A stretch of DNA of 64,000 bases, from positions 186,001 to 250,000 of IMG/VR virus record IMGVR_UViG_3300021137_000001. The stretch is one strand, 5' to 3'. The notes under the pieces were generated by a model that did no database searches, had not been told where the DNA came from, and saw only the letters and a program-made list of their open reading frames with translations. This document shows positions 37,565 to 54,703 of the stretch, in pieces. Made by a program: the position numbers and the translations under genes. Each line of letters starts with the position of its first letter. Position 1 is the stretch's first letter.

Positions 37565-37906
37565 ATGATCAAGTCAATCCAATCATTGTCGCCACATGTA
37601 ACTGTTGACCATTATAGTCCACCATATGTTGGTGGTAATTCTCAGTCAGCTGGGCAGATGCGGTTTAATACTAATACGCAACAAGTAGACGTATACGATG
37701 GCAATAGTTGGATTAGCATGAGTCAAAATGTTAATGTTAGAATGAGTTACACTGCCGAAGAAGCTATTCGGTGGGCTACTATTAAGATGCAGGAAGAGAA
37801 CGAACTTAAAGCTAAAATGGAAAAATACCCAACGTTAAAATCAGCTTATGAACAATATAAGCTAGTTGAGGCGTTGGTTTATGAGGATGATAAAGTTGGA
37901 ACGTGA
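37565..37906 (+). CDS. Hypothetical protein
   Basis: GQMRFNTNTQQVDVYDGNSW motif plus a helical tail. Confidence 0.65.
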   Translation: MIKSIQSLSPHVTVDHYSPPYVGGNSQSAGQMRFNTNTQQVDVYDGNSWISMSQNVNVRMSYTAEEAIRWATIKMQEENELKAKMEKYPTLKSAYEQYKLVEALVYEDDKVGT

Positions 37907-39590
37907 TAATTTAACAGCAAAACAACTCGGAGAAAACAATACATCGGGGTTGAGTCAGTGGAGTGTCTTTTTACCAGCACTGTCTGGCTTTTATGCAACG
38001 TATGTGGGAAAGCAACGCTTCCCTGATCCAGTAAAAGGATTGTATGTTGATGCAACTCGTATGCCGCCAGACTTTGAAAATGGTATGGAAGGGCTCAACT
38101 GGCTTAATCCAGAACAAGCATACTTTCCGTATCATTGGTCATTATATTCTGCAGGTCATGCTGAATTAGATGTTAACAAGTTTAGTCCAAAAGAAGATAT
38201 GGTTCGTAACAGAGATCGTAGTAAATCGTTTATTCTCGGTGACAGTGGTGGGTTCCAGATTGGTAAAGGTGTATGGGAAGGTGATTGGAAGAATCCTAAC
38301 TGTCCTAAAGCACAAAAGAAACGTGAGCTAGTGTTAACTTGGATGGATGCATATATGGATTATGGTATGTGTTTGGATATTCCAGCGTGGGTTGCTCGTA
38401 GTCCAAACGGTGCTAAAGCTACAGGTATTAGCACATACGAAGAAGCTGTACAAGGCACATACATTAATAATGATTGGTTTATTAATAATCGTACAGGTGC
38501 TTGTAAGTTTCTAAACGTATTGCAGGGCGAAAACCATACAGATGCAGACGATTGGTATGATCGTATGAAGAAGTATTGCGACCCTGTACAATATCCAGGC
38601 CGCCATTTTAATGGATGGGCAATGGGCGGGCAAAATATGTGTGATGTACATTTAGTACTTCGCAGACTTGTTGCATTACGCTTTGATGGCTTGTTAGAAA
38701 AAGGTTTGCATGATTGGATGCACTTTTTGGGTACAAGTAAACTAGAGTGGGCAGTGCTATTAACTGACATTCAACGTGCTGTCCGTAAATATCACAACCC
38801 TAACTTTACAATATCATTTGATTGTGCTAGTCCGTTCTTAGCAAGTGCTAACGGACAGATTTATACTCAAACAGAAGTTGAAGATGGTAAGAAATGGGTA
38901 TATCGTATGGTACCAAGTGTAGACAATAAGAAATATGCACTAGATACACGTAGATTCCGTGATGCAGTATTACAAGATGGTAAATTTAAAACGTTTACTG
39001 AAAGCCCAATTAGCGCACGTATTCAAATTAATGATGTGTGTGTATATCACGATGGTGTGCGTAAAACTAAAGCAGAATTAAACGGTGAAGAGTTTGATGT
39101 AACTAATCAAAATCATTATAGCACACCGCCAGCACTTAATAAGATTAATAAGGTTGGCAAAACATCATGGGATAGCTTTGCGTATGCTATTCAAATGGGT
39201 CATAATGTTTGGAGTCATCTTACTTCTGTACAAGAAGCAAACAGACAATATGATAAAGGTATTCGTCCTGCAATGATGTCAGCAATTACAGCAGATAAGA
39301 AATCACATAGAGCATATGATTTAATCTATTTTAGAGACATTGTTGATGCTATATTTGCAATCGACAATAGAGCCGATGCAGAAGCACTAATCGAACACTA
39401 TAATCAATATTGGATGGCTATTCCTGGTTCGCGTGGCGCAATTGGTAAGAAAACAATGAATGCCAGTACTACGTTTAATAGCTTGTTTGATGAAGTTGCA
39501 GTACCAGAAACAGAAGAAGAGCATCACATAGATGACAGTGGATTTGACGAAACTAATCTTAATAACTTAGAAGCAGGTTTGGAGGAATAA
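37887..39590 (+). CDS. dpdA: TGT-family transglycosylase, DpdA-like (7-deazaguanine insertion into DNA)
   Basis: LGDSGGFQ, LDIP, NVLQG, GWAMGG, HFLG, SFDCAS; clustered with folE/queD/queE; start may be TTG 37896. Confidence 0.75.
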   Translation: MIKLERDNLTAKQLGENNTSGLSQWSVFLPALSGFYATYVGKQRFPDPVKGLYVDATRMPPDFENGMEGLNWLNPEQAYFPYHWSLYSAGHAELDVNKFSPKEDMVRNRDRSKSFILGDSGGFQIGKGVWEGDWKNPNCPKAQKKRELVLTWMDAYMDYGMCLDIPAWVARSPNGAKATGISTYEEAVQGTYINNDWFINNRTGACKFLNVLQGENHTDADDWYDRMKKYCDPVQYPGRHFNGWAMGGQNMCDVHLVLRRLVALRFDGLLEKGLHDWMHFLGTSKLEWAVLLTDIQRAVRKYHNPNFTISFDCASPFLASANGQIYTQTEVEDGKKWVYRMVPSVDNKKYALDTRRFRDAVLQDGKFKTFTESPISARIQINDVCVYHDGVRKTKAELNGEEFDVTNQNHYSTPPALNKINKVGKTSWDSFAYAIQMGHNVWSHLTSVQEANRQYDKGIRPAMMSAITADKKSHRAYDLIYFRDIVDAIFAIDNRADAEALIEHYNQYWMAIPGSRGAIGKKTMNASTTFNSLFDEVAVPETEEEHHIDDSGFDETNLNNLEAGLEE

Positions 39591-39591
39591 C

Positions 39592-39777
39592 ATGGATAAA
39601 GGCAAACTCGAAAGTCATATCGAACGCTTAGTACAGCACCACGCAGATCTCGAACTGCAAATTAAAGAAGGGCGTAGTAACTATGTTGGCGATGCTAAAC
39701 TTAGCAAAGTTAAGCAAGAAAGATTAATTGTTAAGCGTCAAATTGAAGAATCTAAAACAAAATTAAAGGCACTATAA
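39592..39777 (+). CDS. Small coiled-coil protein (YdcH/DUF465-like)
   Basis: L..H..LE..I...K.ERL.VK..IE pattern; GGAGG SD. Confidence 0.6.
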   Translation: MDKGKLESHIERLVQHHADLELQIKEGRSNYVGDAKLSKVKQERLIVKRQIEESKTKLKAL

Positions 39778-40658
39778 TGAAAAGTTTAGTTATTGGTATG
39801 GGTATTGGTAATTTGTATCATGAAGTACTTACAAATTTAGGATATGAAATCGTAACCGTAGATCAAGATGCAACAAAAAATGCAGACTTTACCAGTGTTG
39901 CACTTGCACTAGCATCACATGAATATTTTGACACAGTGCATATCTGCACACCAAACTTTACACACGAAGCTATCGCGAGAGAAGTTGCTACCCATGCTAA
40001 ACTTGTATTCATCGAAAAGCCAGGAGTTAAAACTTCGGCAATTTGGCAACAGCTAGTCAAAGACTTTCCATATACACGTTTTATGATGGTTAAGAACAAT
40101 CAATGGCGTGAAAATATTGCAGAGTTACAAGCACTTGCGCAACGTAGTGTTAAAGTGGAACTTAATTGGATTAATCGTAATCGTGTTCCTGGTCCAGGTA
40201 CTTGGTTTACTACTAAAGAGTTAGCATATGGCGGTGTTAGCCGTGATTTGATGACACACTTGTTAAGTCTTTATATAGCACTTAGCGAAGATTATACTAA
40301 GCCAGCATTAACTCATTATAACGTAGCACAACGTTATACATTGGCAGAAGTGTCTGATACAGAATACGGTACGGTTAAGGCAGATGGTATATATGACGTA
40401 GATGATTTATGTGAATTTATATTTGAATCTCCCGAGCGTAAGTGGCGTTTAGTAGCAGACTGGCGCAATTTAACTGACGATGACCGCGGTATTAACTTTC
40501 ATATGGCAGACGGTAAAGTCGAACGTTTTGAATTAGGATTGTGCCCAGCAGAAGCATACCAAGCAATGATTAAAGATGCTGTTGAAAACATTGACAACGA
40601 TGCTTGGTTTAGTGTACAATTAGACTATGACTTATGGATTCATGGAAAGGTAGAATAG
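39777..40658 (+). CDS. Gfo/Idh/MocA-family NAD-dependent oxidoreductase
   Basis: IGMGIG, ICTPNFTH, IEKPG, GGVSRDLMTH. Confidence 0.85.
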   Translation: MKSLVIGMGIGNLYHEVLTNLGYEIVTVDQDATKNADFTSVALALASHEYFDTVHICTPNFTHEAIAREVATHAKLVFIEKPGVKTSAIWQQLVKDFPYTRFMMVKNNQWRENIAELQALAQRSVKVELNWINRNRVPGPGTWFTTKELAYGGVSRDLMTHLLSLYIALSEDYTKPALTHYNVAQRYTLAEVSDTEYGTVKADGIYDVDDLCEFIFESPERKWRLVADWRNLTDDDRGINFHMADGKVERFELGLCPAEAYQAMIKDAVENIDNDAWFSVQLDYDLWIHGKVE

Positions 40659-40659: not shown

Positions 40660-41556
40660 TTGAGAGTTAAATTATTATGCACAGATGGCCTAGGCACATT
40701 CCAAGAAATTGCGTGGGATAAGCCAGCAATTAACAACAACGAAATTGAAGTTAAAGCAGTAATGACGGGTGTTTGTCGTAGTGACATCGATATGATGAAT
40801 GGCGAGTTTGGCCCATTGCCTATTCATATGCACGGACACGAAGGATTAGGCATTGTAACTAAAGTGGGTGCTAACATAACTGATGTAGAAGTAGGCAATT
40901 ATGTTGCTACCCGTGGTGAACCTGCTTATGCGGATTATTACAATGTACGCAAAGACGAATATGTCGGGGTACCCACATCAGAACCTAAATACATATTAGA
41001 ACCTGTTGCTTGTGGTATCAACGTAGTAAATCAAAATTTACGTGATGTTGCCGAACGTGCTGGCGAAGGTCGACGCTTGTTGATATTAGGCAGTGGCTTC
41101 CTTGCGTGGGTTGCGTATAATACATTGTTGATTAACCATTTAGAATTCGATATTACAGTGATTGGTCGTAGTAATCAAGACTTATGGCAAGGTAAGCTAT
41201 CTCATGAAATTACTGGTGTTTATGATGTTATTATTGACTTAACTGAACGCACTGATTACTTACAGGGCGATTGTGTTGCAAATAATGGCTTAATCATTAT
41301 TGGTACAGACAAGCACATTAATCAAACGTTCGGACAGTTAATTTGGAAAGCAGTTACTATTAGTTTTCCAAGTCCACGTACACCACGCTTTTATGAAGCA
41401 ATGGTAATGGCACGTGACTGGGTCGCTAGTGGTCAATTAAATGTTGACAAATTCTGGACAAAGTCGTATAATCGTAATACAGAGTGGCAATCTGCATTTG
41501 CAGATGGCCAAAACAGACCAGTAGGCTACAGCAGAGGATATATTAAGTGGGATTAA
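40660..41556 (+). CDS. Zn-dependent MDR alcohol/sugar dehydrogenase
   Basis: GVCRSD, GHEG.G.V..VG, LEPVAC, ILGSG; TTG start. Confidence 0.85.
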   Translation: MRVKLLCTDGLGTFQEIAWDKPAINNNEIEVKAVMTGVCRSDIDMMNGEFGPLPIHMHGHEGLGIVTKVGANITDVEVGNYVATRGEPAYADYYNVRKDEYVGVPTSEPKYILEPVACGINVVNQNLRDVAERAGEGRRLLILGSGFLAWVAYNTLLINHLEFDITVIGRSNQDLWQGKLSHEITGVYDVIIDLTERTDYLQGDCVANNGLIIIGTDKHINQTFGQLIWKAVTISFPSPRTPRFYEAMVMARDWVASGQLNVDKFWTKSYNRNTEWQSAFADGQNRPVGYSRGYIKWD

Positions 41557-42068
41557 ACACAGAAGAAAGACAGGAGGTAGTTTACTTTACAGGATTTGAA
41601 GTAGAGCATACTATTTGCTATGGTATGAAAACTTTGTTTGTTGTAGGTACTCCGCCAGTGGCAGAAATTATAGAAAAAGCTGAAACAAACGAATGTAAGC
41701 ATATTTACTTTGGCACAAGTCAAAGTTTCAATCCTACAGCAATGACACAGGAAGAATATAAACCATGGGATGATGTCATTATTGAATGTTTAAAGAATGA
41801 CTATTGGGTTAGCTTAGACTTTGGTGTTGAACATATCGAAGGTGTTATCGAAAGTGGCTATTCAGAATACGCTAGATTTGTTCCTATGATTAGTGTTAAA
41901 TTGCCGTATATCAGCTTACTTAATTATAATGCAACACTTAAACTTGATGACATTACTTGGGGCAAAACAAACCCTGGTGTATGGACACATCATTTACAAA
42001 CGCTAATGGGTAAAGATAAATTTACCCATTGGGATCAATATACACAAGATACTTCAATCGATCTATAA
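41547..42068 (+). CDS. Hypothetical protein in the modification cluster
   Basis: GTG start; EVEHT, HIYFG, KLDD..NPGVW. Confidence 0.7.
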   Translation: MGLNTEERQEVVYFTGFEVEHTICYGMKTLFVVGTPPVAEIIEKAETNECKHIYFGTSQSFNPTAMTQEEYKPWDDVIIECLKNDYWVSLDFGVEHIEGVIESGYSEYARFVPMISVKLPYISLLNYNATLKLDDITWGKTNPGVWTHHLQTLMGKDKFTHWDQYTQDTSIDL

Positions 42069-42079
42069 AGGATTGCAAA

Positions 42080-42592
42080 ATGAATAAAAGTTTCTTTTTA
42101 TATTTACATAATGATTTAAGCGGAAACCCGGCTTGGAAAAAGGTGGGAATAGGAATGACTCCGTATTCCGTTGTGAGATCTAGACAAAAATTTTGTTCTG
42201 ACAGATTTGGATTAACTCATTTATTTTTCGGTGATCCTAGCCATATTGCTTTTTTAGAAAAAGAATTTAAAGATAAATTTTTTCATAATTCGGGTACATA
42301 CATTAATAAAATAAGTGCGCAAACAGAATTATTTAATATGGCAGAAGAAGATATTTTGTTAGCAATTAACAATATCATTAAAATTAATGAATTACATATA
42401 AAGAAATTAGATTTAGCAGTACCGTATTCTGCTGCAAATAGTGGCGAATGTCCGTACAATATACCTTCAGAAGCCGAGTCTCATAATCATTTACGAGATT
42501 TGATTATCGAAGAATGGGATACTATAGTAGTAAGAGGTAAAACATCAAAGGCATCTATTAGATTTTCAAAATTATTCGAGGAAGTAGAATGA
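42080..42592 (+). CDS. GIY-YIG/T5orf172-like hypothetical protein
   Basis: FLYL..WKKVGI..R, TELF; AAGGA SD before ATG 42080. Confidence 0.5.
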   Translation: MNKSFFLYLHNDLSGNPAWKKVGIGMTPYSVVRSRQKFCSDRFGLTHLFFGDPSHIAFLEKEFKDKFFHNSGTYINKISAQTELFNMAEEDILLAINNIIKINELHIKKLDLAVPYSAANSGECPYNIPSEAESHNHLRDLIIEEWDTIVVRGKTSKASIRFSKLFEEVE

Positions 42593-42993
42593 TACAAGCA
42601 GAACGTGAAAAGATAGAACGTATTAAGTCTAATGGAATACGTACAACTTATATTAAAGTTAGAACTGAATTTGAGGGATTTCATTACTACCCTAACGCAG
42701 GTACTATTGATTCGCGTATCAAATTTCTTGAGAATGAACATCGACATATATTCAAAGTTGAAGTGAAAATATCAGTTACGCACCTCGACCGTGAGTTAGA
42801 ATTTTTCTTAGTTAAATGGGCGTTACAAGAATTTATTAAAGCAGGTAATCAAAATCACAAATCGTGTGAGATGATTGCTGTTAACATTTTAGAAAATCAT
42901 TTAATACCATTGTATGGTAATAGATCGTATACTGTAATAGTGTCCGAGGATGGGGAATCAGATGGTATCATTGAATTTGATCCACAGATTTGA
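42589..42993 (+). CDS. Divergent QueD/PTPS-like T-fold protein
   Basis: FEGFH, HRHIF, RELEF, SCEMIA, VSEDGE. Confidence 0.6.
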   Translation: MIQAEREKIERIKSNGIRTTYIKVRTEFEGFHYYPNAGTIDSRIKFLENEHRHIFKVEVKISVTHLDRELEFFLVKWALQEFIKAGNQNHKSCEMIAVNILENHLIPLYGNRSYTVIVSEDGESDGIIEFDPQI

Positions 42994-43705
42994 TTAATGC
43001 ATCTAGAGTAATAGAACATTGTGTGCGTTTAGACCTATTGTCTAATTTCGGAAGTAATTCTAAATTAACATAATGACCTATAATCTCCGGAGAAATATTT
43101 TGTTTAAATCCTTCTGTAATGCTAAATTTGTGATCTAATTCAAATTTTGTACCTCTTTCTAAATTTTGAGGATTAATTTTATTTTGATGATGCGTCCAAC
43201 TCTTATAAGTATGATTAAGGACTTGTTCTCTATATAATTCCCATTCACTTTTTTGTTCTTTAGGAATAGCAATGCCATTTTTAATTTTTGTATTAGTTGC
43301 TTCTGAATAACATACAGGATCTCGACCATTGGCTTTAGCAGATTGTTTTTGTTTAGTTTCGATGCTATGAGTTTTTCCGTACATTGGATTATTAACTCCG
43401 CTGTGCCCGCCACGAAACCTAACTGCTTTAGAGATAGTACTTCCTTTATTCGCAAGCCAGTCGCTATCAGTATGGAGTTGTTTAAGAACAGCATTGCCTT
43501 TCTCGCTCATCTGTTTCATATGAGCTTTCCGTTGTTCAGGAGTAGTATTTTTATCCCGAGATGCTTGCGCTTTTTTAATAAATCCCGGGCATTGGGTAAT
43601 TTTTTCAACACATCTCATTTTTTTGGAGTTATAACTTATGTAAAAGGCTTGACATTCACACAAATAACATGTATTATTAACATTAACAGTAGTAAGTTTA
43701 GGCAT
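42968..43705 (-). mobile_element. Free-standing HNH homing endonuclease with NUMOD3
   Basis: N-terminal Cys cluster, NNPMYGKTHSIETK, ELDHKFS..NLELL..DNRSK; overlaps the 3' end of the neighbouring gene. Confidence 0.75.
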
Positions 43706-43992: not shown

Positions 43993-43993
43993 T

Positions 43994-45085
43994 ATGACCG
44001 TTTACATCGTTGATTTAGAGGCGGTGGACAGTAGGTACACGGGTCAATGGAAAACTCATGTGCCTACTTTGCTTGAAGAACATGGTCATGAAGTATATGT
44101 GATTAATGGTCCTCACGATATTCCGGCTGCAACAACTCCTGGTGCATTCCTTAACTTTGGTGGTACTAACATTTACAAGGCCGCACAGGTTGAGAAAATG
44201 GCTAGACTATTTACTGAAGGACAAATTCATAAAGGTGATCACTTCATCTTTACAGATGCATGGCATCCTGGCATTATCAACTTGAAGTATATGAGTGAGC
44301 TATTACAGATTCCTGTAACTATTCACGCACTATGGCATGCTGGCAGTTACGACCCGCAAGACTTTTTAGGTCGTTTGATTGGTAATAAATCGTGGGTAAG
44401 ACATGCAGAGAAAAGTTTCTTTGCGGCAATTGATCATAACTACTTTGCAACAGACTTTCATATTGATATGTTCTGTGCTAACTTACTTAATGATGGCTTA
44501 TGTGAAAATCCGTGGGCGGCTGAAGATCGAGCAGATATGATTGCTGAAGGTAAGATTGTGCGTAGCGGTTGGCCTATGGAATATATGCCAACAGTACTTG
44601 CGCCATTTAAGAATTTAGAGAAACGTGACTTAATTCTGTTTCCGCATCGTATAGCACCAGAGAAGCAAGTAGAAATCTTTAAGAATCTTGCAAAAACATT
44701 ACCGCAATATGAATGGATTGTCTGTCAGGAAGAACAACTCACTAAAGATGAGTATCATACATTGTTAGGTGAAGCTAAGTTAGTGTTTAGCGCAAACTTA
44801 CAAGAAACACTTGGTATTAGTATGTATGAAGGTGCGTTAGTAAGTGCTATACCGATGGTGCCCGATAGACTCAGCTATCGTGAAATGTTCGATGATACGT
44901 GGAGGTATCCAAGCAAGTGGACTGAATCGTTTGAAAGTTACTTACATCATAAAGAATGTGTGTGTAATTTGATTAATGAATATATGAATAATTACAGTGA
45001 ATATGCTCCGTTAATTCCACAGCAAGCACACAATTTGCATACTAATTTCTTCTCAGCAACTGAAATAATAAAGAATGTCATTTAA
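43994..45085 (+). CDS. GT-B (GT4-like) glycosyltransferase
   Basis: FPHRIAPEKQ, QETLGISMYEG, PDRLSY; ATG 43994 preferred as start. Confidence 0.8.
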   Translation: MTVYIVDLEAVDSRYTGQWKTHVPTLLEEHGHEVYVINGPHDIPAATTPGAFLNFGGTNIYKAAQVEKMARLFTEGQIHKGDHFIFTDAWHPGIINLKYMSELLQIPVTIHALWHAGSYDPQDFLGRLIGNKSWVRHAEKSFFAAIDHNYFATDFHIDMFCANLLNDGLCENPWAAEDRADMIAEGKIVRSGWPMEYMPTVLAPFKNLEKRDLILFPHRIAPEKQVEIFKNLAKTLPQYEWIVCQEEQLTKDEYHTLLGEAKLVFSANLQETLGISMYEGALVSAIPMVPDRLSYREMFDDTWRYPSKWTESFESYLHHKECVCNLINEYMNNYSEYAPLIPQQAHNLHTNFFSATEIIKNVI

Positions 45086-45656
45086 TGCAATAGCAAAGTT
45101 TGAACAGGCTTTAGGTGAACTTACAGGCGCACCTTTTGTTGTTATGACAGATTGTTGCACACATGCACTAGAACTGTGTCTACGTTACGAGAAGGTAAAA
45201 CGATGTCGTTTTAGTGCATTTACCTACCTTTCTGTGCCAATGACCATGCATAAACTGAACATTTCGTATGGTTTAACAGCCGATAATGAATGGGTCGGAG
45301 AATATCCTATACTTGGTACACGGATATGGGATAGTGCAAGATTGTTGCGTATGGGTATGTATCGTGCGGGACAAATGCAGTGCTTGAGCTTTGGATATAG
45401 CAAACCGTTAGACATTGGGCGTGGTGGTGCAATACTCCTAGACGATGAAGTTGCGTATAACAAACTTATACAGCAACGCAGTGATGGCCGAGACCTGCGT
45501 ATTGCTCCGTGGCAAGATCAAAAAGTATTTGAAGTGGGTTATCATTATAGACCAACTATAGAAGAAGCAGTAAGAGCATTAGAAAAATTACTAACCATCA
45601 ATCAAGAACCTAAATACATTAAGTATCCAGACTTACGTGAAATTATTATCAAATAA
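45075..45656 (+). CDS. Short DegT/DnrJ-family PLP aminotransferase
   Basis: CTHALEL, TYLS, IWDSA, LSFGYSKPL..GRGGAI. Confidence 0.8.
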   Translation: MSFNAIAKFEQALGELTGAPFVVMTDCCTHALELCLRYEKVKRCRFSAFTYLSVPMTMHKLNISYGLTADNEWVGEYPILGTRIWDSARLLRMGMYRAGQMQCLSFGYSKPLDIGRGGAILLDDEVAYNKLIQQRSDGRDLRIAPWQDQKVFEVGYHYRPTIEEAVRALEKLLTINQEPKYIKYPDLREIIIK

Positions 45657-45733: not shown

Positions 45734-46435
45734 ATGTCAGACATAAAATATTCAGTAAGTCAATCAGTTCGCGAAAACTTAAAAGCACACAATAAACGTT
45801 TTTGGGCAGGTGACAACATCTCAGAATTCATCAGTGAATCTACTAAAGAAATGCTTATAGACGAAGCCACCGTAGCGTTTGAAGGTGTATTAGATGCATT
45901 GCTAATTGATCGCGAGAATGATCCAAACAGTAAAGGTACAGCACGTAGACTTGCTAAGATGTACTACACAGAGATTATGGCTGGACGTTACGAATTAGCA
46001 CCAGATGCAACAGCGTTTCCAAATGATTCAGAAGATCGTTACGAAGGTATGCTAGTTGTACGTAGCGAACTTAAAAGCATGTGCAGTCATCATCACCAAC
46101 CAGTTTCCGGAGTCGCATACATTGGTATTATTGCTGCGCACAAACTAATCGGACTTAGTAAGTATACACGTATTGCACAATGGTGCGCCACCCGTGGTAC
46201 ATTACAAGAAGAACTATGTAATGATATCTCAAAAGAAATTATGAATGCAACAGCAAGTGAGAATGTAGCAGTTTATATCCAAGCGACACACGGTTGCTGT
46301 GAGAATCGCGGCATTATGGCACATAGTTCATTGACTCAAACTACAGTACTCAAAGGTGCGTTTAATACTGATCCTGGTACTAAGCAAGAATTCTTTGATA
46401 ATGTAAAACTACAACAGCAGTTTGCTCCAAGATAA
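45734..46435 (+). CDS. folE: GTP cyclohydrolase I
   Basis: SMCSHH, IGLSKY.R, LQE, HGCCENRG. Confidence 0.95.
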   Translation: MSDIKYSVSQSVRENLKAHNKRFWAGDNISEFISESTKEMLIDEATVAFEGVLDALLIDRENDPNSKGTARRLAKMYYTEIMAGRYELAPDATAFPNDSEDRYEGMLVVRSELKSMCSHHHQPVSGVAYIGIIAAHKLIGLSKYTRIAQWCATRGTLQEELCNDISKEIMNATASENVAVYIQATHGCCENRGIMAHSSLTQTTVLKGAFNTDPGTKQEFFDNVKLQQQFAPR

Positions 46436-46444: not shown

Positions 46445-46804
46445 ATGTTTAAGAGATGGTTAATACGTTTAGCAGATAAATGGCGCATAAATGACTGGGA
46501 AGATACTGTGCCAGAACCCAAACAAGTCTGGGGCGGTGGGCGTAAACAGCGTAAGCAGACACTTAGTAGTGGGATGAATAGTTCAACACTAACATCTAAG
46601 TCACATCACCGGGTATCACACAACTACGACGACGATGGAGTAATTACATTTAAAGTGTATAGTGCAAATGGTGGCAAGATAGTTGAGGCATCACGTTACG
46701 ATAACAATCGAGACAACGAAGTTATTAAACTGTATATTATTGAAGAAAATGCAGACTTTACAGAATCGTTGGCTAAAATTGTTACAATGGAGTATTTACG
46801 ATGA
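46445..46804 (+). CDS. Hypothetical protein
   Basis: FKVYSANGGKIVE..YD. Confidence 0.7.
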   Translation: MFKRWLIRLADKWRINDWEDTVPEPKQVWGGGRKQRKQTLSSGMNSSTLTSKSHHRVSHNYDDDGVITFKVYSANGGKIVEASRYDNNRDNEVIKLYIIEENADFTESLAKIVTMEYLR

Positions 46805-47295
46805 ATAAGATTGAAAAAGTATATTATGGTGATGTACACGTTAGAGATATGATTAGCGATATCTCTATGAAAATGCATCGTGACAATTGGAAACCCGATT
46901 ACATTGTTGGGTTAACACGTGGCGGATTGATTCCAGCAGTGTATCTAAGTCACTATCTTGATGTTCCAATGGAAACATTAAAAGTAAGTTTGCGTGATAA
47001 TGCAGATACCGAAAGTAACTTATGGATGGCAGAAGATGCGTTTAATGGTAAAAACATTCTTATCGTAGACGACATTAATGACACCGGTGCTACGTTAGAT
47101 TGGATTATCAATGATTGGCAAAGCAGTTGCTTACCAGATGACCCACATTGGGAACATGTGTGGGGAGATAATGTTAGAATAGCGGTATTAGTTGATAATT
47201 TAAGTAGTAACTTTAGTTGTCAAGTAGACTATTGTGCTGTTGAGATTAACAAAGCAGAAAAAGATGTATGGATTGTTTACCCATGGGAAAGATAG
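46801..47295 (+). CDS. Type I phosphoribosyltransferase (Gpt-like)
   Basis: GLTRGGLIP, LIVDDINDTGAT, WIVYPWE. Confidence 0.92.
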   Translation: MNKIEKVYYGDVHVRDMISDISMKMHRDNWKPDYIVGLTRGGLIPAVYLSHYLDVPMETLKVSLRDNADTESNLWMAEDAFNGKNILIVDDINDTGATLDWIINDWQSSCLPDDPHWEHVWGDNVRIAVLVDNLSSNFSCQVDYCAVEINKAEKDVWIVYPWER

Positions 47296-49368
47296 ATGTC
47301 TGCAGCATATAAAATAAGATTAATTAATAAAACAGGTGCTATCCGTTATCCTCTTTCACTACTATGGGCCACAGCAAAAACATATTACGAAGAAAATAGC
47401 AAACATGCCGACTTATGGGATTGGGGCGAAGCCGATTACGATTATTCAGACATCGACGCACTGATTAATCGATTGATAGATGAACAGCCAACTATTGTTG
47501 GATTTAGTGTGTACCTTTGGAATGAATCTGTTGTTTTACTTATGTCGGAAAAATTAAAAGATGCAATGCCCAATCTCATTATTGTATATGGTGGGCCACA
47601 GCAAGATATAAAATTCAATGGTGATTATTTCAAAGATCGTCCTTATACTGATTTGATTGTTCCTAGTGATGCATACGGCGAAGGATCTATATATGATATA
47701 TTAGAAAACATCGTTAATAATAATGGTATACTAGATGCACCGTTAGTTCCGTATTCGTATTGGCCAAACCAATCTCGCGAAGTACAGTTCAACAGTTTGT
47801 CTCCGAAGAAAAGAGATTTTAAATGGCCAAAAAATGCACTCAGGGCACAAGAGAAACATATAATTCCGTTAATTAAAAAAGCCAAAGATGCAAACATAGG
47901 CAATATTTGGATACAGATGGAAACCAGTCGAGGATGTCCATATAAATGTAGTTTTTGTGACTGGGGTGGCGGAACATTTACTAAAACAGTTAAGAAAGAT
48001 TTTGGTTTTGTCATGGATGAAATAACATGGGCAGGCGAAAACCAAATTGATGGGTTATTCTTTTGTGATGCAAATTTTGGTCTTTTTTCTATAGATATAG
48101 AATATATTAAACATTGCATAAAAATGAAAGAAAAATACGGGTATCCTAAGTTTGTAAATATACAACCTACTAAGACTAAAATTGACAATTTATATCAAGT
48201 ATACTTACTATTATCAAATGCAGATATGCTAGCGTATTATAGTATCTCAATTCAAGACCTGAATGACGATGTTAAAAAGAATGTAGATCGAATTGACTTT
48301 AGTTTCGAAGATCAGGTACAGATGTTTAGAAAATTACAAACAAATGCAGACAGATATTTGCCAGTTTGGATCGAAACTATTATGGGTTTGCCGGGATCTT
48401 CAATCAATACCATAAAAGAAAGTATACATCGTATTAATTTAGAAAAATTACCATTTCCGATTGGCTATGTATGGGCTCTGCTGCCTGCGGCGCCCGCATA
48501 TGATCCCGAATACAGAAAACAATATAAAATAAAAACAATCAAAGGTAAAACATCAGCCGGTATGGGCAGCGGAACACCGTTGAGGGAGAAACCAAATAGG
48601 ACTATGGACCCTGGTGTTAATAAAACAGTAGCCGATACTGCTGATACAATGACAGAATATGTAGTAGAAACTATGTCGTATAATTCCAACGACTGGGTCA
48701 ACATGAATATGCTGTCAATATTTACTGCATCTACTCAATCATCTGAAATTTTAGATCTAGTATCACATTATATGTGGCAAGAACATAAAGTTAACTACGG
48801 TGATCTTTTTCATGAAATAATGAATACAGTACTTTATGACGAGCGAGTAGATTATGAATTTAGAAAGGAAATGTCTAATTTAAAACTAGCATACGATACT
48901 TGGTTAACTGATAGTAAAAGTGATGTCTTTTGTGATTTTAAAGATGAATTTGCATTTACTATTTCTCCAGTTATCTATTATATTTTTATTATTCTTATTA
49001 ATACTGATAAGTTTTTTGACGGAGTAATACTTGCTATTAGTAAATTTGTCGAAGTAGATGATCGTATCTTAGATCTATGTCATTTTTCAAAAAATAGATT
49101 ATTGGATATCACTTATCGTCCAGGAAGAATTTTTAGTACACAATACGATTGGCCTAAATATAATAAAGAAGGTATATTAGATCATACACCAAAAACTTAT
49201 CAAATTACTGATACAGAAGTATTTACTGGGAAGGTGTGGTTTCCAATTGATTGGGAATTATATGAAGGTACCCTTAATTATTATTCACATTATATCTACA
49301 GAGTATGTTATGATATGCGATCCAAAAAAACTTCAGTCAATATGAATGAACTTGACTTAACAGTTTAA
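47296..49368 (+). CDS. Radical SAM enzyme with N-terminal B12-binding-like domain
   Basis: GFSVYLWN, YGGP, ETSRGCPYKCSFCDW, DANFG, IMGLPG. Confidence 0.85.
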   Translation: MSAAYKIRLINKTGAIRYPLSLLWATAKTYYEENSKHADLWDWGEADYDYSDIDALINRLIDEQPTIVGFSVYLWNESVVLLMSEKLKDAMPNLIIVYGGPQQDIKFNGDYFKDRPYTDLIVPSDAYGEGSIYDILENIVNNNGILDAPLVPYSYWPNQSREVQFNSLSPKKRDFKWPKNALRAQEKHIIPLIKKAKDANIGNIWIQMETSRGCPYKCSFCDWGGGTFTKTVKKDFGFVMDEITWAGENQIDGLFFCDANFGLFSIDIEYIKHCIKMKEKYGYPKFVNIQPTKTKIDNLYQVYLLLSNADMLAYYSISIQDLNDDVKKNVDRIDFSFEDQVQMFRKLQTNADRYLPVWIETIMGLPGSSINTIKESIHRINLEKLPFPIGYVWALLPAAPAYDPEYRKQYKIKTIKGKTSAGMGSGTPLREKPNRTMDPGVNKTVADTADTMTEYVVETMSYNSNDWVNMNMLSIFTASTQSSEILDLVSHYMWQEHKVNYGDLFHEIMNTVLYDERVDYEFRKEMSNLKLAYDTWLTDSKSDVFCDFKDEFAFTISPVIYYIFIILINTDKFFDGVILAISKFVEVDDRILDLCHFSKNRLLDITYRPGRIFSTQYDWPKYNKEGILDHTPKTYQITDTEVFTGKVWFPIDWELYEGTLNYYSHYIYRVCYDMRSKKTSVNMNELDLTV

Positions 49369-49408: not shown

Positions 49409-50257
49409 ATGAAATTAAAAGTTAGTGAGATATTTTATTCAGCGCAAGGTGAAGGACGCTTTATTGGCGTTCCGTCGTTATTTCTGCGTACATTTGGCTG
49501 TAACTTTACCTGCGGTGGCTTTGGTATGCCACGCGGCACAGTTAGTGCAGAGCGCAATGTAATTAAAGTCGAACAATACAAGTCGTACAATGACCTACCA
49601 CTTGTTAATACAGGGTGCGATAGTTACGCAAGCTGGGATCCGAAATTTAAAAGTTTAAGTCCGTTATTATCTATAGACGAAACAGTTAAGCAAATGCTTG
49701 ATGTTATTCCCAATAACAATTGGCAACAAACAAATGGTAATAACGTGCATTTAGTTATTACAGGCGGTGAGCCGTTATTAGGATGGCAACGTGCGTTTCC
49801 TAAGTTGTTAGATCATGCTGATATGGCAAACTTACAGAATCTTACGTTTGAAACAAACGGCACACAGGCGTTACATGCAGACTTTGCTAGATATTTACAA
49901 GTATGGTCTGCTACACGTGGAGAAGTTACATTTAGTGTAAGCCCTAAACTATCAGCAAGTGGGGAAACTTGGGAAGATGCTATTAAACCCGAGATTGTAA
50001 ACAGTTACGAGTTTGCTGGTACAACGTATCTCAAGTTTGTTATCGAAACACCAAATGACTTCGATGAAGTTGATCGCGCTGTAGTTGCATATAGAACAGC
50101 AGGCTTTACTGGTATGGTTTATGTTATGCCTGTTGGTGGTGTTGTTAGCGTATATGATGGTAACAAGTTCCATATTGCAGACGAAGCAATGAAACGCGGT
50201 TATTATTACAGTCCACGACTTCATATCGAACTTTGGGGCAATTCTTGGGGAAAATGA
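49409..50257 (+). CDS. queE: 7-carboxy-7-deazaguanine synthase
   Basis: EIFYSAQGEG..G.P.LFLRTFGCN..C, GCDS, VITGGEP, FETNG, SVSPKL, PRLH. Confidence 0.9.
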   Translation: MKLKVSEIFYSAQGEGRFIGVPSLFLRTFGCNFTCGGFGMPRGTVSAERNVIKVEQYKSYNDLPLVNTGCDSYASWDPKFKSLSPLLSIDETVKQMLDVIPNNNWQQTNGNNVHLVITGGEPLLGWQRAFPKLLDHADMANLQNLTFETNGTQALHADFARYLQVWSATRGEVTFSVSPKLSASGETWEDAIKPEIVNSYEFAGTTYLKFVIETPNDFDEVDRAVVAYRTAGFTGMVYVMPVGGVVSVYDGNKFHIADEAMKRGYYYSPRLHIELWGNSWGK

Positions 50258-50379
50258 TGTTTAAACGATTTATAGCATGGGTTAAAGAATGGCACGAGAC
50301 GTTAAGTGATCCAACAAATTGGGATGATAGCAACGATCCTTGCCCGTATAAATGTAATTGTGATAAGGACAACAAATAA
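50254..50379 (+). CDS. Small hypothetical protein (41 aa, not in the ORF track)
   Basis: Exactly fills the gap with ATGA and TAATG coupling at the two ends. Confidence 0.55.
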   Translation: MMFKRFIAWVKEWHETLSDPTNWDDSNDPCPYKCNCDKDNK

Positions 50380-50828
50380 TGTGGAAAAAAATTAAAGCAA
50401 CACTAGGTTTAAACAAAGCAGAGCTAGCAGAAGCCGAAGCCAAAGCGATGGCCGCGAGCGAAGCACGAACTAAACGTGCAGAAGCAAAAGCCGAAGCTAA
50501 AGCAGAGAAAGCCAAAGTTAAAGTGCTATCGGCTAAAGACGAAGCAACTGCAAACGGTCAGCCGTGGGTAGAAGTACTTGGCATTGAAGTAGACGAAGCT
50601 GATCCAGGACAAGGTGCGTTTGAACTTGACTGGAATGATGTGTTTATCACTAAATTGGTACGTGCAGGCTTCCAAGGTAAAACAGATCAAGACTTAGTCG
50701 ACAACTGGTTTAAAGCAGTATGTCGCAATGTAGTAACAGAAACATACGAACAAGATCAAGCCGACCCAGAAAAACGTGCAGAATCACGTAGACGTGACTT
50801 AGGTAACGGCAGAACAGAAGTATCTTGA
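50379..50828 (+). CDS. Hypothetical protein with Ala/Glu/Lys-rich N-terminus
   Basis: PWVEVL..GAFELDWN..VDNWF..VCRN. Confidence 0.75.
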   Translation: MWKKIKATLGLNKAELAEAEAKAMAASEARTKRAEAKAEAKAEKAKVKVLSAKDEATANGQPWVEVLGIEVDEADPGQGAFELDWNDVFITKLVRAGFQGKTDQDLVDNWFKAVCRNVVTETYEQDQADPEKRAESRRRDLGNGRTEVS

Positions 50829-52579: not shown

Positions 52580-52744
52580 ATGAGCCAAGATACAGATTTT
52601 TCAGGATTCGGTGGATGGACGTGGATAGCATTAGCGGCACTCGATGGGTATTTTTTTCATTTTACGTATACTATAATGATAGTAAAGTTAGCATGGGCAC
52701 TTCTGTCTATAGGGTGGATGTTTTTTAGTTGGTTTTGGTTTTAA
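52580..52744 (+). CDS. Small membrane protein (54 aa, not in the ORF track)
   Basis: Trp/Phe-rich ORF filling the gap. Confidence 0.55.
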   Translation: MSQDTDFSGFGGWTWIALAALDGYFFHFTYTIMIVKLAWALLSIGWMFFSWFWF

Positions 52745-52757
52745 TGAAAGAAAATAA

Positions 52758-53348: not shown

Positions 53349-54015
53349 TGCGGCCCAATACAAAACCGTCAGCGGGACATTCTTTAGAAAATTTTTGAAT
53401 GTCCCCATTAGTCCACCATCGCTTTTCTTTGTTTACGGCAGCACCTAATGCGGCACCCACATTGTTGAATTTTAATCTACCTCGTATATACGAACTATCT
53501 GGAGCAGTCGGAGTAAAACATTGTTCCACGCCGTTGTTCCACCATTTATTATTCTTACGCTGTATACCCATTTCTATTTTTTGTTCTTCTGTGAACTTTT
53601 GTAAACCTTTATGTGCTCGTCCTATTTTTAATTTAGTAGCATCTGTCATCGGTAGACGCTGTAGATGTGCTGCCACTAACTTTGCTCGCTTACTGTCGGT
53701 GATTTTAACATTCGGTGCTCCGTCACCTCCATCTGTTAAATTAAGCAATATACCAGTGCCCAAATCCTTACGTCCATACCACGCAATTATTCTACGCTCA
53801 ATAGCAAACGCACCGATTTCAGTTAAATTAGTTTCAAGTATTGTGATATTCGATTTATCAGCAGGCACAGCAACACCTCGGGGGCCGTTACGATGCTGTT
53901 GATATGCTCTATTGTTCTTACCTTTGCCTATATAGTAAGGAGTGCCTGCTTTGGCTGTAGTGGAATCTTTATCTCGCAGGTATGCGTAGACGTAATAAAT
54001 AGTATTGCTGAACAT
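53338..54015 (-). mobile_element. Free-standing GIY-YIG endonuclease
   Basis: YYVYAYLR..PYYIGKG..R, E..II..YGRKD..LLNLTDGGDG, two WWxNG repeats. Confidence 0.8.
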
Positions 54016-54080
54016 ATAACCCTCCCAGGTTGTTTAGAGTAGTTGGATATTTCCGTATCGCGAACTACACTATTATTTAT
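54013..54080 (-). promoter_or_regulatory. Conserved 5' leader element of GIY-YIG genes, copy 2
   Basis: ATAAATA, then GUAGUU-CGC-GAUA-N6-UAUC-C-AACUAC hairpin. Confidence 0.8.
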
Positions 54081-54151
54081 CAAAAATACTTGCTCTTCTT
54101 CTTTTTTTCGTATATACTAACAGTTAAATCAACTAATAAAGGACATCAAAT

Positions 54152-54703
54152 ATGTTATGGACAATAGACAAAGAATTTCACTTCGAAATGGGGCATCGGG
54201 TATGGGCACAGAAATTAGATCGCCCAGATTTAAGTATTGAAACAGACTGCCAGTGCCGCCACCTCCACGGTCATTCCTATTCTATTAAGGTATTCCTAGG
54301 AGCAGATACCTTAGACCAAAGTGCTATGGTTACAGACTTTAAGAACTTAAACTTTATGAAAGAGTTTGTGGATAATGTATTAGATCATAAGTTTATGATT
54401 GATATTAATGATCCAAACTTTGAAATTATTACAAGTGTTAGCCCAAAGTTTACTGATAATATTGGAGAGTTTAAGAACTTTATAAACTTAGGTGAAGTAT
54501 TTGGCGTAGGTATTCCTGGTTTAGTAGACGCAGATAGACAATTACATATGAACAGCTTCGTATTAGTAGACTTTGTTCCTACAAGCGAAAACATCTGTAA
54601 GTATTTGAAACTGTATGCTCAAGAGCGTATTGGCGATTTTGCCACAGTAACAGCCGTTGAACTTTGGGAAACTAAAAAATCACATTGTAGATACGAGGAT
54701 TAA
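54152..54703 (+). CDS. queD: 6-carboxytetrahydropterin synthase
   Basis: FEMGHR, CRHLHGHSY, VTDF, LDH, PTSEN, WET. Confidence 0.9.
   Translation: MLWTIDKEFHFEMGHRVWAQKLDRPDLSIETDCQCRHLHGHSYSIKVFLGADTLDQSAMVTDFKNLNFMKEFVDNVLDHKFMIDINDPNFEIITSVSPKFTDNIGEFKNFINLGEVFGVGIPGLVDADRQLHMNSFVLVDFVPTSENICKYLKLYAQERIGDFATVTAVELWETKKSHCRYED

Follow-up and report, generated by a model that had tools for sequence, protein, structure and literature searches.

A freshwater jumbo phage carries the genes of a known QueC-less pathway for putting 7-deazaguanine into its DNA, and these genes sit next to a conserved glycosyltransferase (GT) and swappable sugar-tailoring genes, suggesting that its DNA may hold a sugar-bearing guanine analogue that has not yet been described. 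We analyzed a 64,000-nucleotide stretch (the window) of the 329,321-bp genome, in which the cluster occupies positions 37887-54703. An earlier note, made from the sequence alone, had described this region as a 7-deazaguanine DNA-modification cluster mixed with amino-sugar-type genes and had inferred a glycosylated or otherwise elaborated deazaguanine in the phage DNA.

Gene content of the 7-deazaguanine island

To test whether the genes listed in the earlier note were present, the predicted proteins were compared with Pfam, PHROG and NCBIfam profiles, and selected proteins were modeled and used in structural searches. The observation made in the note was confirmed, as every gene it listed was found on the + strand and in the order it gave. 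The features of the island are as follows.

37887..39590 (+), DpdA-like DNA guanine transglycosylase with a predicted TGT fold and an acidic C-terminal tail; the ORF opens at 37866, and relatives start near 37887.
39777..40658 (+), Gfo/Idh/MocA-family NAD(P) oxidoreductase, accessory (Pfam PF01408 and PF22725; weak NCBIfam sugar-dehydrogenase hits).
40660..41556 (+), Zn-dependent MDR alcohol dehydrogenase-like oxidoreductase (ADH), accessory and always found together with Gfo (Pfam ADH_N; NCBIfam).
41547..42068 (+), u173, a conserved core protein with no assigned fold or function, always between DpdA and DpdL.
42029..42592 (+), u187, a sporadic ORF, possibly a selfish-element gene and probably not part of the pathway (no family hit).
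42589..42993 (+), DpdL, a QueD paralog proposed to decarboxylate 7-carboxy-7-deazaguanine (CDG) to 7-deazaguanine.
42968..43705 (-), NUMOD3 homing endonuclease (Pfam NUMOD3) that travels with this DpdL allele.
43994..45085 (+), GT-B, GT4-like (retaining-type) glycosyltransferase; the ORF opens at 43877 with a basic 39-aa extension shared only with the closest relatives.
45075..45656 (+), mini DegT-like PLP enzyme (193 aa), overlapping the GT stop codon.
45734..46435 (+), FolE, GTP cyclohydrolase I (Pfam, 130 bits; NCBIfam).
46445..46804 (+), u119, a small variable protein with no family hit, weakly conserved in 22 loci.
46801..47295 (+), 6-oxopurine-type phosphoribosyltransferase (PRTase; Pfam Pribosyltran; best NCBIfam hits xanthine PRT and HGPRT), with homologs PA5oct gp163 and BUCT-ZZ01 UTS52039.
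47296..49368 (+), cobalamin-dependent radical SAM methyltransferase, TokK/CysS/KedN5-like, accessory (Pfam B12-binding plus Radical_SAM; NF033712, E 5e-43; PDB TokK 7kdx, E 2e-41, and CysS, E 7e-31).
49409..50257 (+), QueE-like radical SAM CDG synthase (phrog_2076, E 4e-53; partial NCBIfam QueE hits), homologous to PA5oct gp162.
54152..54703 (+), QueD, 6-carboxytetrahydropterin synthase (Pfam PTPS, E 5e-26; TIGR03367), with the canonical CxxxHGH motif (CRHLHGH).

In addition to the NUMOD3 gene, the interval contains a virion-protein homolog (50379-50828), a 5'-3' exonuclease and an RNase T exonuclease that are not pathway genes. Start and stop codons overlap or abut at ADH/u173, GT/DegT, u119/PRT and PRT/B12 radical SAM. 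QueC and QueF were absent when the whole genome was searched, and the controls for both searches were positive.

The DpdA-like protein had no Pfam, PHROG or NCBIfam hit. When its AlphaFold model was used as a query, only tRNA-guanine transglycosylases were found among the top 50 PDB hits (prob 1.0, E 3e-6, TM by target about 0.45), and phage TGT/DpdA proteins were matched in BFVD. The motifs DSGGFQ and FDCASP are invariant in 20 relatives. Its homologs include PA5oct gp168 (34% identity) and Phosso XYS97597, but the protein is sequence-distinct from the Pfam TGT model and from the ACP17/X1/phiST DpdA3 set; a DpdA3 profile gave no hit, and by sequence it is not linked to any named DpdA subfamily.

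The small T-fold gene that the earlier note called QueD-like is DpdL. It contains LENEHRHIF, which matches the LxxxHRHxF signature (PMC10516641), it matches phrog_17812, and homologs are found in phiST, ACP17, PA5oct (gp166) and BUCT-ZZ01. The predicted base core is therefore the known 7-deazaguanine (dDG), as in Cellulophaga phage phiST, and not CDG.

The window copy of the GT had no Pfam hit, but 11 of 20 family members hit Glycos_transf_1 (PF00534). Its model (pLDDT 83) is a GT-B/GT4 fold, for which Foldseek matched BshA, glycogen synthase, MshA, PimA and BH4 glucosyltransferase, with tRNA-queuosine mannosyltransferase at rank 5 in Swiss-Prot. The EX7E motif, R219 and K224 are invariant, and more than 8000 metagenomic relatives were found. 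These structural matches are generic GT4 matches, so nothing in them points to DNA as the acceptor.

The DegT-like protein is half the normal size, and its length is conserved (192-195 aa in relatives). It hit Pfam DegT (E 5e-10) in two pieces, the PLP-lysine motif is kept, and the Lys of SFGYSK aligns to the catalytic Lys of PDB 9bgp. Protein u173 is probably an enzyme, given its invariant E18, E20, H52, K132, D134 and D135. It had no Pfam or PDB hit and only a weak Atlas lead to GH-like fragments, but its ACP17 homolog (gp122) scores E 4e-52, and metagenomes contain 785 cluster representatives.

Distribution of the island in related phages

The earlier note had named independent assortment of the sugar genes and dpdA as an outcome that would count against its reading, so we asked how these genes are distributed. 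The arrangement is more than chance, as the same gene order recurs in 46 of 46 informative related loci, all of which have u173 and the GT. The GT is adjacent to DpdL and the dpdA-like gene in at least eight divergent lineages. It lies within 0-4 kb of DpdL in PA5oct, where it is gp167, and in Phosso, ACP17, X1, BUDD, BCSR5, BUCT-ZZ01, the distant contigs L095/L097 and this clade, and thus the sugar genes do not assort independently of the cluster. QueC and QueF were also lacking in PA5oct, Phosso, ACP17 and BUCT-ZZ01. ACP17 and BUCT-ZZ01 have the GT but no ThyA-family enzyme, showing that the GT is not tied to hydroxymethyl-pyrimidines. The GT is absent from phiST, where plain dDG is proven, and from D479, Bakedbeans and RHph_I1_18, indicating that it is an add-on and not part of the base pathway.

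The conserved core is DpdA-u173-DpdL-GT-FolE-PRT-QueE, with the PRTase present in 28 of 32 loci. Gfo and ADH (3 of 32 relatives) and the B12 radical SAM (6 of 32) are accessory, and the mini-DegT is present in 22 of 32 loci. Among 80 loci, Gfo was present in 9 and u187 had a homolog only in the locus L025, whereas NUMOD3 co-occurs with the 92-96% identical DpdL allele in loci L014-16 and L025. Gfo-ADH-GT-u173-DpdL are contiguous in distant contigs, including L095 and L097, whose DpdA is only 32-35% identical to that of the window, indicating that Gfo and ADH are old partners of this block. At the same spot other relatives carry different NDP-sugar genes, namely GDP-mannose 4,6-dehydratase (391 bits), full-length DegT (263 bits), NAD epimerase and UDP-sugar dehydrogenase, and some carry a different B12 radical SAM between GT and DegT. 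The island is also a hotspot for unrelated cargo (homing endonucleases, a sulfate permease, a subtilase and a peptide deformylase), so some sugar genes could be morons.

Proposed pathway and alternatives

Based on these results, the interpretation in the earlier note was partly supported: this is a QueC-less 7-deazaguanine cluster with a TGT-fold exchanger and associated sugar genes, but the note missed DpdL, and some of the sugar genes it grouped together are accessory. In the pathway we propose, FolE, QueD and QueE make CDG from GTP, a step that is established, and the identities of these genes are shown here. DpdL would then remove the carboxyl group to give 7-deazaguanine, as proposed by Cui et al. 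2023; this decarboxylase activity has never been shown, and co-expression of dpdL and dpdA from ACP17 gave no dDG. The DpdA-like enzyme would swap this base for guanine in the phage's own DNA after replication; its fold and catalytic motifs are shown here, whereas its substrate is inferred. It is also inferred that the PRTase most likely recycles the released guanine to GMP, which would pull the exchange forward and refeed FolE, or alternatively that it ribosylates CDG, as TubE does in tubercidin biosynthesis. The GT would then place a sugar on the deazaguanine, on the DNA or on the free base.

In this phage, the donor sugar would be tailored by Gfo/Idh/MocA and Zn-ADH (oxidation to a keto sugar), the mini-DegT (transamination) and the TokK-like B12 radical SAM enzyme (C-methylation), and relatives use other NDP-sugar cassettes. 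We consider a DpdL-type 7-deazaguanine DNA-modification system to be very likely and a functional role of the GT in that system to be probable. The sugar itself is inferred from gene content alone, and whether the final DNA base carries one is at best an even proposition, as is the pathway as a whole. No report of a sugar on any deazaguanine in DNA was found in the literature library searched. In addition, dDG offers no obvious hydroxyl acceptor, an N2 sugar would sit in the minor groove and touch Watson-Crick pairing, and retaining GT4 enzymes are not known to C-glycosylate.

It is possible, but less likely, that the DNA carries only plain dDG, which is already known, and that the GT and sugar genes act on a small molecule, making a transient glycosylated intermediate or carrier form of the base, or a huimycin/dapiramicin/tubercidin-like 7-deazapurine glycoside or nucleoside that is never incorporated into DNA. 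Consistent with this, actinomycetes have natural 7-deazapurine glycosides made by a glycosyltransferase and CDG + PRTase + decarboxylase routes without QueC, a purine PRTase is in the conserved core, phiST makes dDG without the GT, and the free base is chemically the easier acceptor. However, the TGT-fold exchanger is strictly conserved beside the GT, a diffusible metabolite gives no obvious benefit to a lytic jumbo phage, and the pattern of sugar diversification fits an arms race over a DNA mark. PA5oct DNA also behaves as "hypermodified" towards END nucleases (PMC12191111), although plain dDG might be enough for that.

It is similarly doubtful that the GT and sugar-tailoring genes are unrelated cargo that glycosylate virion proteins, the host envelope or another target and sit here only because this stretch of the replication module is an insertion hotspot. 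The unrelated cargo and several homing endonucleases in the island, and the patchy distribution of Gfo/ADH, the B12 radical SAM and the mini-DegT, are consistent with this possibility. Against it are the recurrence of GT-DpdL adjacency in phage families with different flanking genes (T4-like ACP17, the cyanophage BUCT-ZZ01, X1, BCSR5, Phosso and PA5oct), its presence in all 46 informative relatives, the translational coupling within the block and the contiguous Gfo-ADH-GT-u173-DpdL genes of distant contigs.

Modification of phage or host tRNA at G34 is not excluded, given the tRNA-guanine transglycosylase fold, the tRNA-Tyr(GTA), His(GTG) and Asp(GTC) genes of this genome and the structural similarity of the GT to tRNA-queuosine mannosyltransferase, but it is very unlikely because the gene lies between the DNA polymerase/clamp-like genes and the exonucleases, all characterised phage TGT homologs act on DNA (PMC10516641), the PA5oct homolog-bearing phage has restriction-resistant DNA (PMC12191111), and there is no QueC or QueF to make preQ1.

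Comparison with known systems

The base pathway predicted here is the one known from phiST, and what is new is the GT next to DpdL in at least eight divergent lineages. The DNA of one of these phages, PA5oct, is reported to carry a modified G, the chemistry of which was not determined (PMC12191111). Precedents exist for glycosyltransferases that act on 7-deazaguanines. The gene-cluster family of the huimycin pathway carries a PF13439 (GT4-type) glycosyltransferase, and HuiG glycosylates the exocyclic N2 of a 7-deazaguanine scaffold, which makes this nitrogen the best precedent for the acceptor atom. The second precedent, tRNA-queuosine mannosyltransferase, is a close structural match to the GT4-like model of the window. 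If the proposed pathway is correct, the outcome would be a clade-wide glycosyl-7-deazaguanine whose sugar diversifies, much as the sugars on hydroxymethylcytosine do in T-even phages.

Gene content of the island and its predicted base-modifying enzymes

The window corresponds to bases 186001-250000 of a 329,321-bp IMG/VR virus record with direct terminal repeats, that is, a complete jumbo phage genome, and is about 37% G+C. Near-identical DNA occurs, as assembled contigs only, in many freshwater and lake-sediment metagenomes from 2012 to 2016, whereas a search of the phage collection for near-identical DNA returned no match, and no cultured phage is close at the DNA level. By protein similarity and synteny, this phage is a distant relative of Pseudomonas jumbo phage PA5oct (Arenbergviridae) and of Sinorhizobium phage Phosso. 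The observation made in the earlier note holds, as every gene that it listed is present on the plus strand and in the order it gave. The genes of the island are as follows.

37887-39590, plus strand: DpdA-like protein with a predicted TGT fold
39777-40658, plus strand: Gfo/Idh/MocA oxidoreductase (PF01408)
40660-41556, plus strand: Zn-ADH-like oxidoreductase (ADH_N)
41547-42068, plus strand: u173, a protein without a family hit
42029-42592, plus strand: u187, a sporadic protein without a family hit
42589-42993, plus strand: DpdL, called QueD-like in the earlier note
42968-43705, minus strand: NUMOD3 homing endonuclease (Pfam)
43994-45085, plus strand: glycosyltransferase (GT)
45075-45656, plus strand: 193-aa DegT-like protein (mini-DegT)
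45734-46435, plus strand: FolE (130 bits)
46445-46804, plus strand: u119, a protein without a family hit
46801-47295, plus strand: PRTase (Pfam Pribosyltran)
47296-49368, plus strand: B12 radical SAM enzyme
49409-50257, plus strand: QueE (phrog_2076, E 4e-53)
54152-54703, plus strand: QueD, with the canonical CRHLHGH motif

Between QueE and QueD lie a virion-protein homolog, a 5'-3' exonuclease, and an RNase T-type exonuclease, which are replication or structural genes and not pathway genes. To test whether the missing pathway steps are encoded outside the window, as the earlier note had proposed, we searched the entire genome for QueC and QueF; both are absent, and both searches had positive controls. 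A scan for promoters and terminators gave counts at the shuffled expectation and was not used further.

The 567-aa DpdA-like protein has no Pfam, PHROG, NCBIfam, or PDB-sequence hit, even when a profile of 20 relatives was used to search the PDB sequences, and the Pfam TGT model PF01702 gave no hit at E <= 1 in the window genome, PA5oct, or Phosso. Its AlphaFold model is of moderate quality (pLDDT 66, pTM 0.71), but the top 50 PDB matches to this model are all Zymomonas mobilis tRNA-guanine transglycosylase (probability 1.0, E 3e-6 to 6e-5, TM by target only about 0.45), and its matches among viral models in BFVD include annotated phage TGTs, a Vibrio phage nt-1 protein, and phiST DpdA3. The motifs GDSGGFQ and SFDCASP are invariant in 20 relatives and correspond, as motifs, to the two catalytic-aspartate motifs of TGT (D102 and D280 of the Z. 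mobilis enzyme). Based on fold and motifs, this protein is a TGT-superfamily enzyme. By sequence, however, it is not a member of the DpdA3 set (ACP17, X1, BUCT-ZZ01, and phiST) or of the DpdA3 subfamily, which includes phiST, ACP17, and Campylobacter phages, as hhalign gave a probability of 0.4%, reciprocal HMM searches found nothing, and BLASTP against ACP17 gp123 gave E 0.32. We therefore treat it, together with PA5oct gp168 and the Phosso homolog, as an unclassified DpdA-like lineage. Its C terminus (39440-39590) is a conserved acidic tail (consensus EEHHxDDSGLDExxLDxLE) of low model confidence that is reminiscent of the acidic tails that dock replication proteins. In the T4-like cyanophage BUCT-ZZ01 (a Synechococcus phage; locus L008), two tandem paralogous DpdA3-like genes (L008:9388-10731 and L008:10724-11974; 447 and 416 aa), both annotated as hypothetical, lie upstream of DpdL and the GT homolog.

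The gene described as QueD-like in the earlier note is DpdL. DpdL was defined by Cui, Hutinet et al. (NAR 2023) as a QueD paralog in which CxxxHGH has become LxxxHRHxF and which occurs in phages that have DpdA, FolE, QueD, and QueE but no QueC; it was proposed to be the CDG decarboxylase that yields 7-deazaguanine, and dDG replaces all G in Cellulophaga phage phiST (PMC10516641). The window protein reads LENEHRHIF, occurs in this same genomic context, is 34% identical to phiST CGPG_00067, and is also homologous to ACP17 gp125, PA5oct gp166, and others. The predicted base core is therefore the already known dDG, not CDG, with the caveat that decarboxylation by DpdL has never been demonstrated. 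This DpdL allele is 96% identical to the copy at the IMG/VR relative locus L014, 92% to that at locus L025, and 63% to the BUCT-ZZ01 copy, but only about 40% identical to the DpdL of most clade relatives. It always sits beside the same minus-strand NUMOD3 homing endonuclease, which looks like allele replacement by homing. Three NUMOD3/HNH homing endonuclease genes (42968-43705, 56213-56959, and 59821-60477), all on the opposite strand to the surrounding genes, lie within 17 kb, and relatives have further ones in the island (DUF723 and NUMOD3). A MoxR-type AAA ATPase and a DUF2201 metallopeptidase/VWA protein lie downstream of the island (58691-59788 and 62007-63290).

A predicted glycosyltransferase accompanies DpdL

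By fold and motif, the GT is a genuine GT4-type enzyme. Its model is good (pLDDT 83, pTM 0.83) and shows a two-Rossmann GT-B/GT4 fold, with best matches to BshA, glycogen synthase, PglA, MshA, and PimA (TM 0.5-0.65, probability 1.0); GlgM and tetrahydrobiopterin glucosyltransferase are also among the best PDB matches. In Swiss-Prot, the tRNA-queuosine alpha-mannosyltransferase ranks fifth among otherwise generic GT4 enzymes. The EX7E motif (E271-x7-E279) and the basic residues R219 and K224, of the kind that bind the NDP phosphate, are invariant across 20 sequences that reach down to 22% identity. In a Pfam scan for Glycos_transf_1 (PF00534), the window copy scored only E 0.24, and 11 of 20 family members matched, the best at 8e-12. 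The GT ORF can be read 39 codons further upstream (43877-43993), giving a Lys/Arg-rich extension that is also open and partly conserved in the closest relatives (loci L014, L063, and L078) but absent from all others, so the true start is uncertain.

To ask whether the GT belongs to the module, we examined its neighborhood in other phages. The GT sits within 0-4 kb of DpdL in PA5oct (gp167/gp166), Phosso (gene numbers 224/223 in the record's notes), the T4-like Acidovorax phage ACP17 (gp124/gp125), Xanthomonas phages X1 and BUDD, Burkholderia phage BCSR5, BUCT-ZZ01, and two distant metagenomic contigs (L095 and L097). We also obtained 80 of more than 600 IMG/VR relatives, and all 46 with at least 4.5 kb downstream of dpdA have u173, DpdL, and the GT, in the order pol, methyltransferase, clamp-like, DpdA, u173, DpdL, GT, (mini-DegT), FolE, (u119), PRTase, QueE, virion protein, exonuclease. 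In one further relative, L067 (IMGVR_UViG_3300017949_001012), on a contig of only 6.9 kb, the dpdA homolog (68% identity) is followed within 3 kb by the 5'-3' exonuclease, with u173, DpdL, the GT, FolE, the PRTase, and QueE missing in between; in that genome the module is either elsewhere or lost. In contrast, a GT profile found nothing in phiST, Vibrio phages D479 and Bakedbeans, or Rhizobium phage RHph_I1_18, all of which have DpdL. The GT is thus an optional extension of the dDG pathway, and the one phage with proven plain dDG lacks it. The methyltransferase in this gene order (35834-36760; class I SAM, Methyltransf_23), which lies between the family B DNA polymerase and the clamp-like gene, is only 30-40% identical among relatives whose polymerase is 75-90% identical, so it evolves fast or has been replaced.

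The sugar-tailoring genes are patchier. Among the 32 fully covered loci of this clade, Gfo and ADH occur in only 3, the B12 radical SAM in 6, and the mini-DegT in 22, and on a DpdA tree the Gfo/ADH carriers form two separate subclades. They are not a one-off insertion, however, as Gfo-ADH-GT-u173-DpdL form one contiguous block in contigs whose DpdA is only 32-35% identical to that of the window (the PA5oct level of divergence), with identities there of 37-39% for Gfo, 45% for ADH, and 47-51% for the GT. Other relatives carry different cargo at the same position between dpdA and queE: GDP-mannose 4,6-dehydratase (391 bits) next to a second dehydratase/epimerase-family gene and a full-length DegT (263 bits), an NAD-dependent epimerase/dehydratase, a UDP-glucose/GDP-mannose dehydrogenase-like protein, three further radical SAM families, a SulP sulfate permease, and a subtilase. 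The closest relatives (loci L013-L016 and L063) have the SulP-family gene (167 bits) inserted between the Gfo and ADH homologs (e.g. L014:4621-5802), whereas the window lacks it; it could hint at sulfated sugars or be an unrelated auxiliary gene. This pattern looks like one constant glycosyltransferase served by interchangeable NDP-sugar cassettes.

The mini-DegT lacks about half of the fold-type-I architecture of about 360-400 aa, matching only profile positions 25-76 and about 168-244, and its short length is conserved in relatives. It nevertheless keeps the PLP Schiff-base lysine, as the K of SFGYSK aligns with the catalytic Lys in SFHPRK of PDB 9bgp, whose sister entry 9bgr has Ala at that position. 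The PRTase is closest to xanthine and hypoxanthine-guanine PRTs and is conserved in PA5oct (gp163) and BUCT-ZZ01.

The u173 protein is strictly conserved in the core and founds a large uncharacterized family, with 785 metagenomic cluster representatives at E <= 0.001. Outside this clade it is found in ACP17 (gp122, next to DpdA3) but was not detected in PA5oct, phiST, or BCSR5. Pfam searches with the single protein and with 19 members, and a profile search of the PDB, returned no hit, and two Atlas searches gave at best a weak GH-like lead of 0.87. Some members are fused to a C-terminal domain of 100-180 aa; these long forms (259-352 aa) contain neither DpdL nor any other window protein and have no Pfam domain. 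A predicted complex of the DpdA-like protein (residues 1-520) with u173 scored 0.00, with a pLDDT of 38 for the partner, and does not count as evidence either way.

Proposed pathway and its significance

The gene identities, folds, motifs, synteny, and co-occurrence are results of this analysis, whereas the synthesis of CDG by FolE, QueD, and QueE, the exchange of 7-deazaguanines into DNA after replication by phage DpdA proteins, and the existence of dDG in DpdL phages are established elsewhere (PMC10516641). What we infer is that DpdL yields 7-deazaguanine, that the DpdA-like enzyme inserts it into DNA, that the PRTase salvages the expelled guanine, which would drive the exchange and refeed FolE, or alternatively ribosylates CDG as in the tubercidin pathway, and that the GT attaches a sugar whose donor would be tailored by Gfo and ADH (keto-sugar formation), the mini-DegT (amination), and the TokK-like radical SAM enzyme (C-methylation). 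For base insertion by this DpdA-like lineage, the evidence is only indirect, namely the restriction resistance at G sites of DNA from PA5oct, which bears a homolog.

The interpretation offered in the earlier note, a glycosylated or otherwise elaborated deazaguanine, is partly supported: it remains the best single reading, but we regard it as about as likely as not, and the base core is expected to be the known dDG. No chemical data support a sugar on this base, dDG lacks a hydroxyl, so the acceptor would be unusual, and the structural matches of the GT are generic. Two glycosyltransferases provide precedents for action on 7-deazaguanines: HuiG, which glycosylates a nitrogen of 2-amino-6-methoxy-7-cyano-7-deazapurine with UDP-GlcNAc, and tRNA-queuosine mannosyltransferase, a close structural match to the GT4-like model of the window. 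An independent hint comes from an END-nuclease preprint (PMC12191111), in which PA5oct is restricted by nucleases that target hypermodified or G-modified phages; its authors noted only QueE and PTPS in the PA5oct genome, and no mass spectrometry of PA5oct DNA is reported. A GA/GG motif dependence has been reported for PA5oct.

A tRNA target for the TGT-fold enzyme is not strictly excluded, as a cluster of 13 tRNA genes outside the window (G000:C1:117294-123356) includes Tyr(GTA), His(GTG), and Asp(GTC), the tRNA classes with GUN anticodons that tRNA-guanine transglycosylases normally modify. The island is also an insertion hotspot, with homing endonucleases and unrelated cargo. Conversion of CDG to hydroxymethyl- or aminomethyl-deazaguanine by Gfo, ADH, and the mini-DegT is chemically attractive but was set aside, as no carboxylate-activating enzyme is present and most GT-bearing relatives lack Gfo and ADH. 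About 7 kb upstream of dpdA (26633-31075), a 1065-aa protein with an Amidoligase_2 domain, which could in principle act on a carboxylate such as CDG, sits next to a 369-aa GNAT acetyltransferase; PA5oct has nothing comparable at this position. Action of the GT on hydroxymethyl-pyrimidines was set aside because the only ThyA-family hit in the window genome scores like an ordinary thymidylate synthase, and ACP17 and BUCT-ZZ01 have the GT but no ThyA-family enzyme at all. A pterin glycoside pathway was also set aside, as BH4 glucosyltransferase is only one of many GT4 matches and such a pathway would not need QueE or DpdA.

Based on these results, the island is a real, conserved, and very widespread variant of the phage 7-deazaguanine DNA-modification system. 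Its base-making part, the dDG route with DpdL, is already known. The tight and ancient coupling to a GT4-type glycosyltransferase, a new core protein (u173), a purine PRTase, and interchangeable sugar-tailoring cassettes is not described in the literature that we could search, in which no paper links a glycosyltransferase to DpdA or DpdL or reports a glycosylated deazaguanine in DNA. The family is large, with more than 8000 GT relatives and more than 600 related viral contigs. It is possible, although we consider it somewhat less likely than not, that a very abundant clade of freshwater and soil jumbo phages, together with PA5oct, ACP17, X1, BCSR5, and a cyanophage, replaces guanine with a glycosylated 7-deazaguanine whose sugar is diversified between close relatives by interchangeable NDP-sugar cassettes (amino, deoxy, uronic, and C-methyl sugars), and that u173 is a new enzyme needed for the step that heterologous expression of dpdA and dpdL failed to reproduce. 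Such a base would be the first sugar-bearing purine in any DNA and the first purine counterpart of glucosyl-hydroxymethylcytosine, and would form a new chemical class, as all eight known DNA 7-deazaguanines are small C7 variants. The analysis also names candidate genes (gp168, gp167, gp166, and gp163) for the modified G of PA5oct, a phage being considered for therapy, and makes the GT and u173/gp122 candidates for the missing partners in the co-expression of dpdL and dpdA that did not give dDG. The swappable sugar cassettes look like a record of conflict with modification-dependent nucleases and glycosylases (END, Dag, and Brig-type). The reading is directly testable in cultivable phages (PA5oct, ACP17, X1, and BUCT-ZZ01).

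Comparison with known systems

The 690-aa B12 radical SAM enzyme has an N-terminal B12-binding domain and a radical SAM core (PF02310 plus PF04055) and aligns over 420 residues to TokK (7kdx, E 2e-41, residues 10-431) and to CysS (E 7e-31), but its score of 147 bits is far below the NCBIfam KedN5 cut-off of 700. TokK and CysS are iterative cobalamin-dependent C-methylases, and the TokK/ThnK/CysS enzymes methylate carbapenem or cystobactamid side chains, whereas the substrate here may be a sugar carbon or the deazapurine C7/C8.

The T-even phage glucosyl/arabinosyl-hydroxymethylcytosine systems follow the same logic, in which a GT-B enzyme decorates a non-canonical DNA base with sugars that diversify between relatives. 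In those systems, however, the base is a pyrimidine made at the nucleotide level with a hydroxymethyl acceptor, the T4 alpha- and beta-glucosyltransferases did not appear among the top 50 structural matches of the GT, and ACP17 and BUCT-ZZ01 have no ThyA-type hydroxymethylase.

In the huimycin/dapiramicin and tubercidin pathways of actinomycetes (bioRxiv 10.64898/2026.04.15.718813), HuiG, a glycosyltransferase of a gene-cluster family annotated with PF13439 (GT4 type), glycosylates a nitrogen of a 7-deazaguanine scaffold using UDP-GlcNAc, the dapiramicin pathway adds deoxysugar tailoring, and tubercidin biosynthesis uses CDG with a PRTase and a decarboxylase and has no QueC. Those clusters lack any TGT or DpdA and make free metabolites, and the tubercidin decarboxylase is UbiD-type, not a T-fold protein.

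The PA5oct (Wroclawvirus) gp168-gp162 region is syntenic with the window, with pol, clamp-like, DpdA-like (34% identity), GT (41%), DpdL, PRTase, QueE, virion protein, and exonuclease genes, and with FolE and PTPS elsewhere in its genome. Its DNA is experimentally resistant at G-containing sites, and the chemistry of its modified G is unpublished in the literature searched. PA5oct has no Gfo, ADH, mini-DegT, or B12 radical SAM and no detectable u173.

The dDG pathway of phiST (FolE, QueD, QueE, DpdL, and DpdA3; PMC10516641) has no GT, u173, PRTase, or sugar genes, and its DpdA3 is 259 aa, whereas the 567-aa window protein is not detected by a DpdA3 profile, although it matches phiST DpdA3 structurally (rank 19). 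Like the window phage, phiST has FolE, QueD, and QueE, a DpdL with the LxxxHRHxF motif, no QueC or QueF, and, as exchanger, a distant TGT-fold protein next to replication genes.
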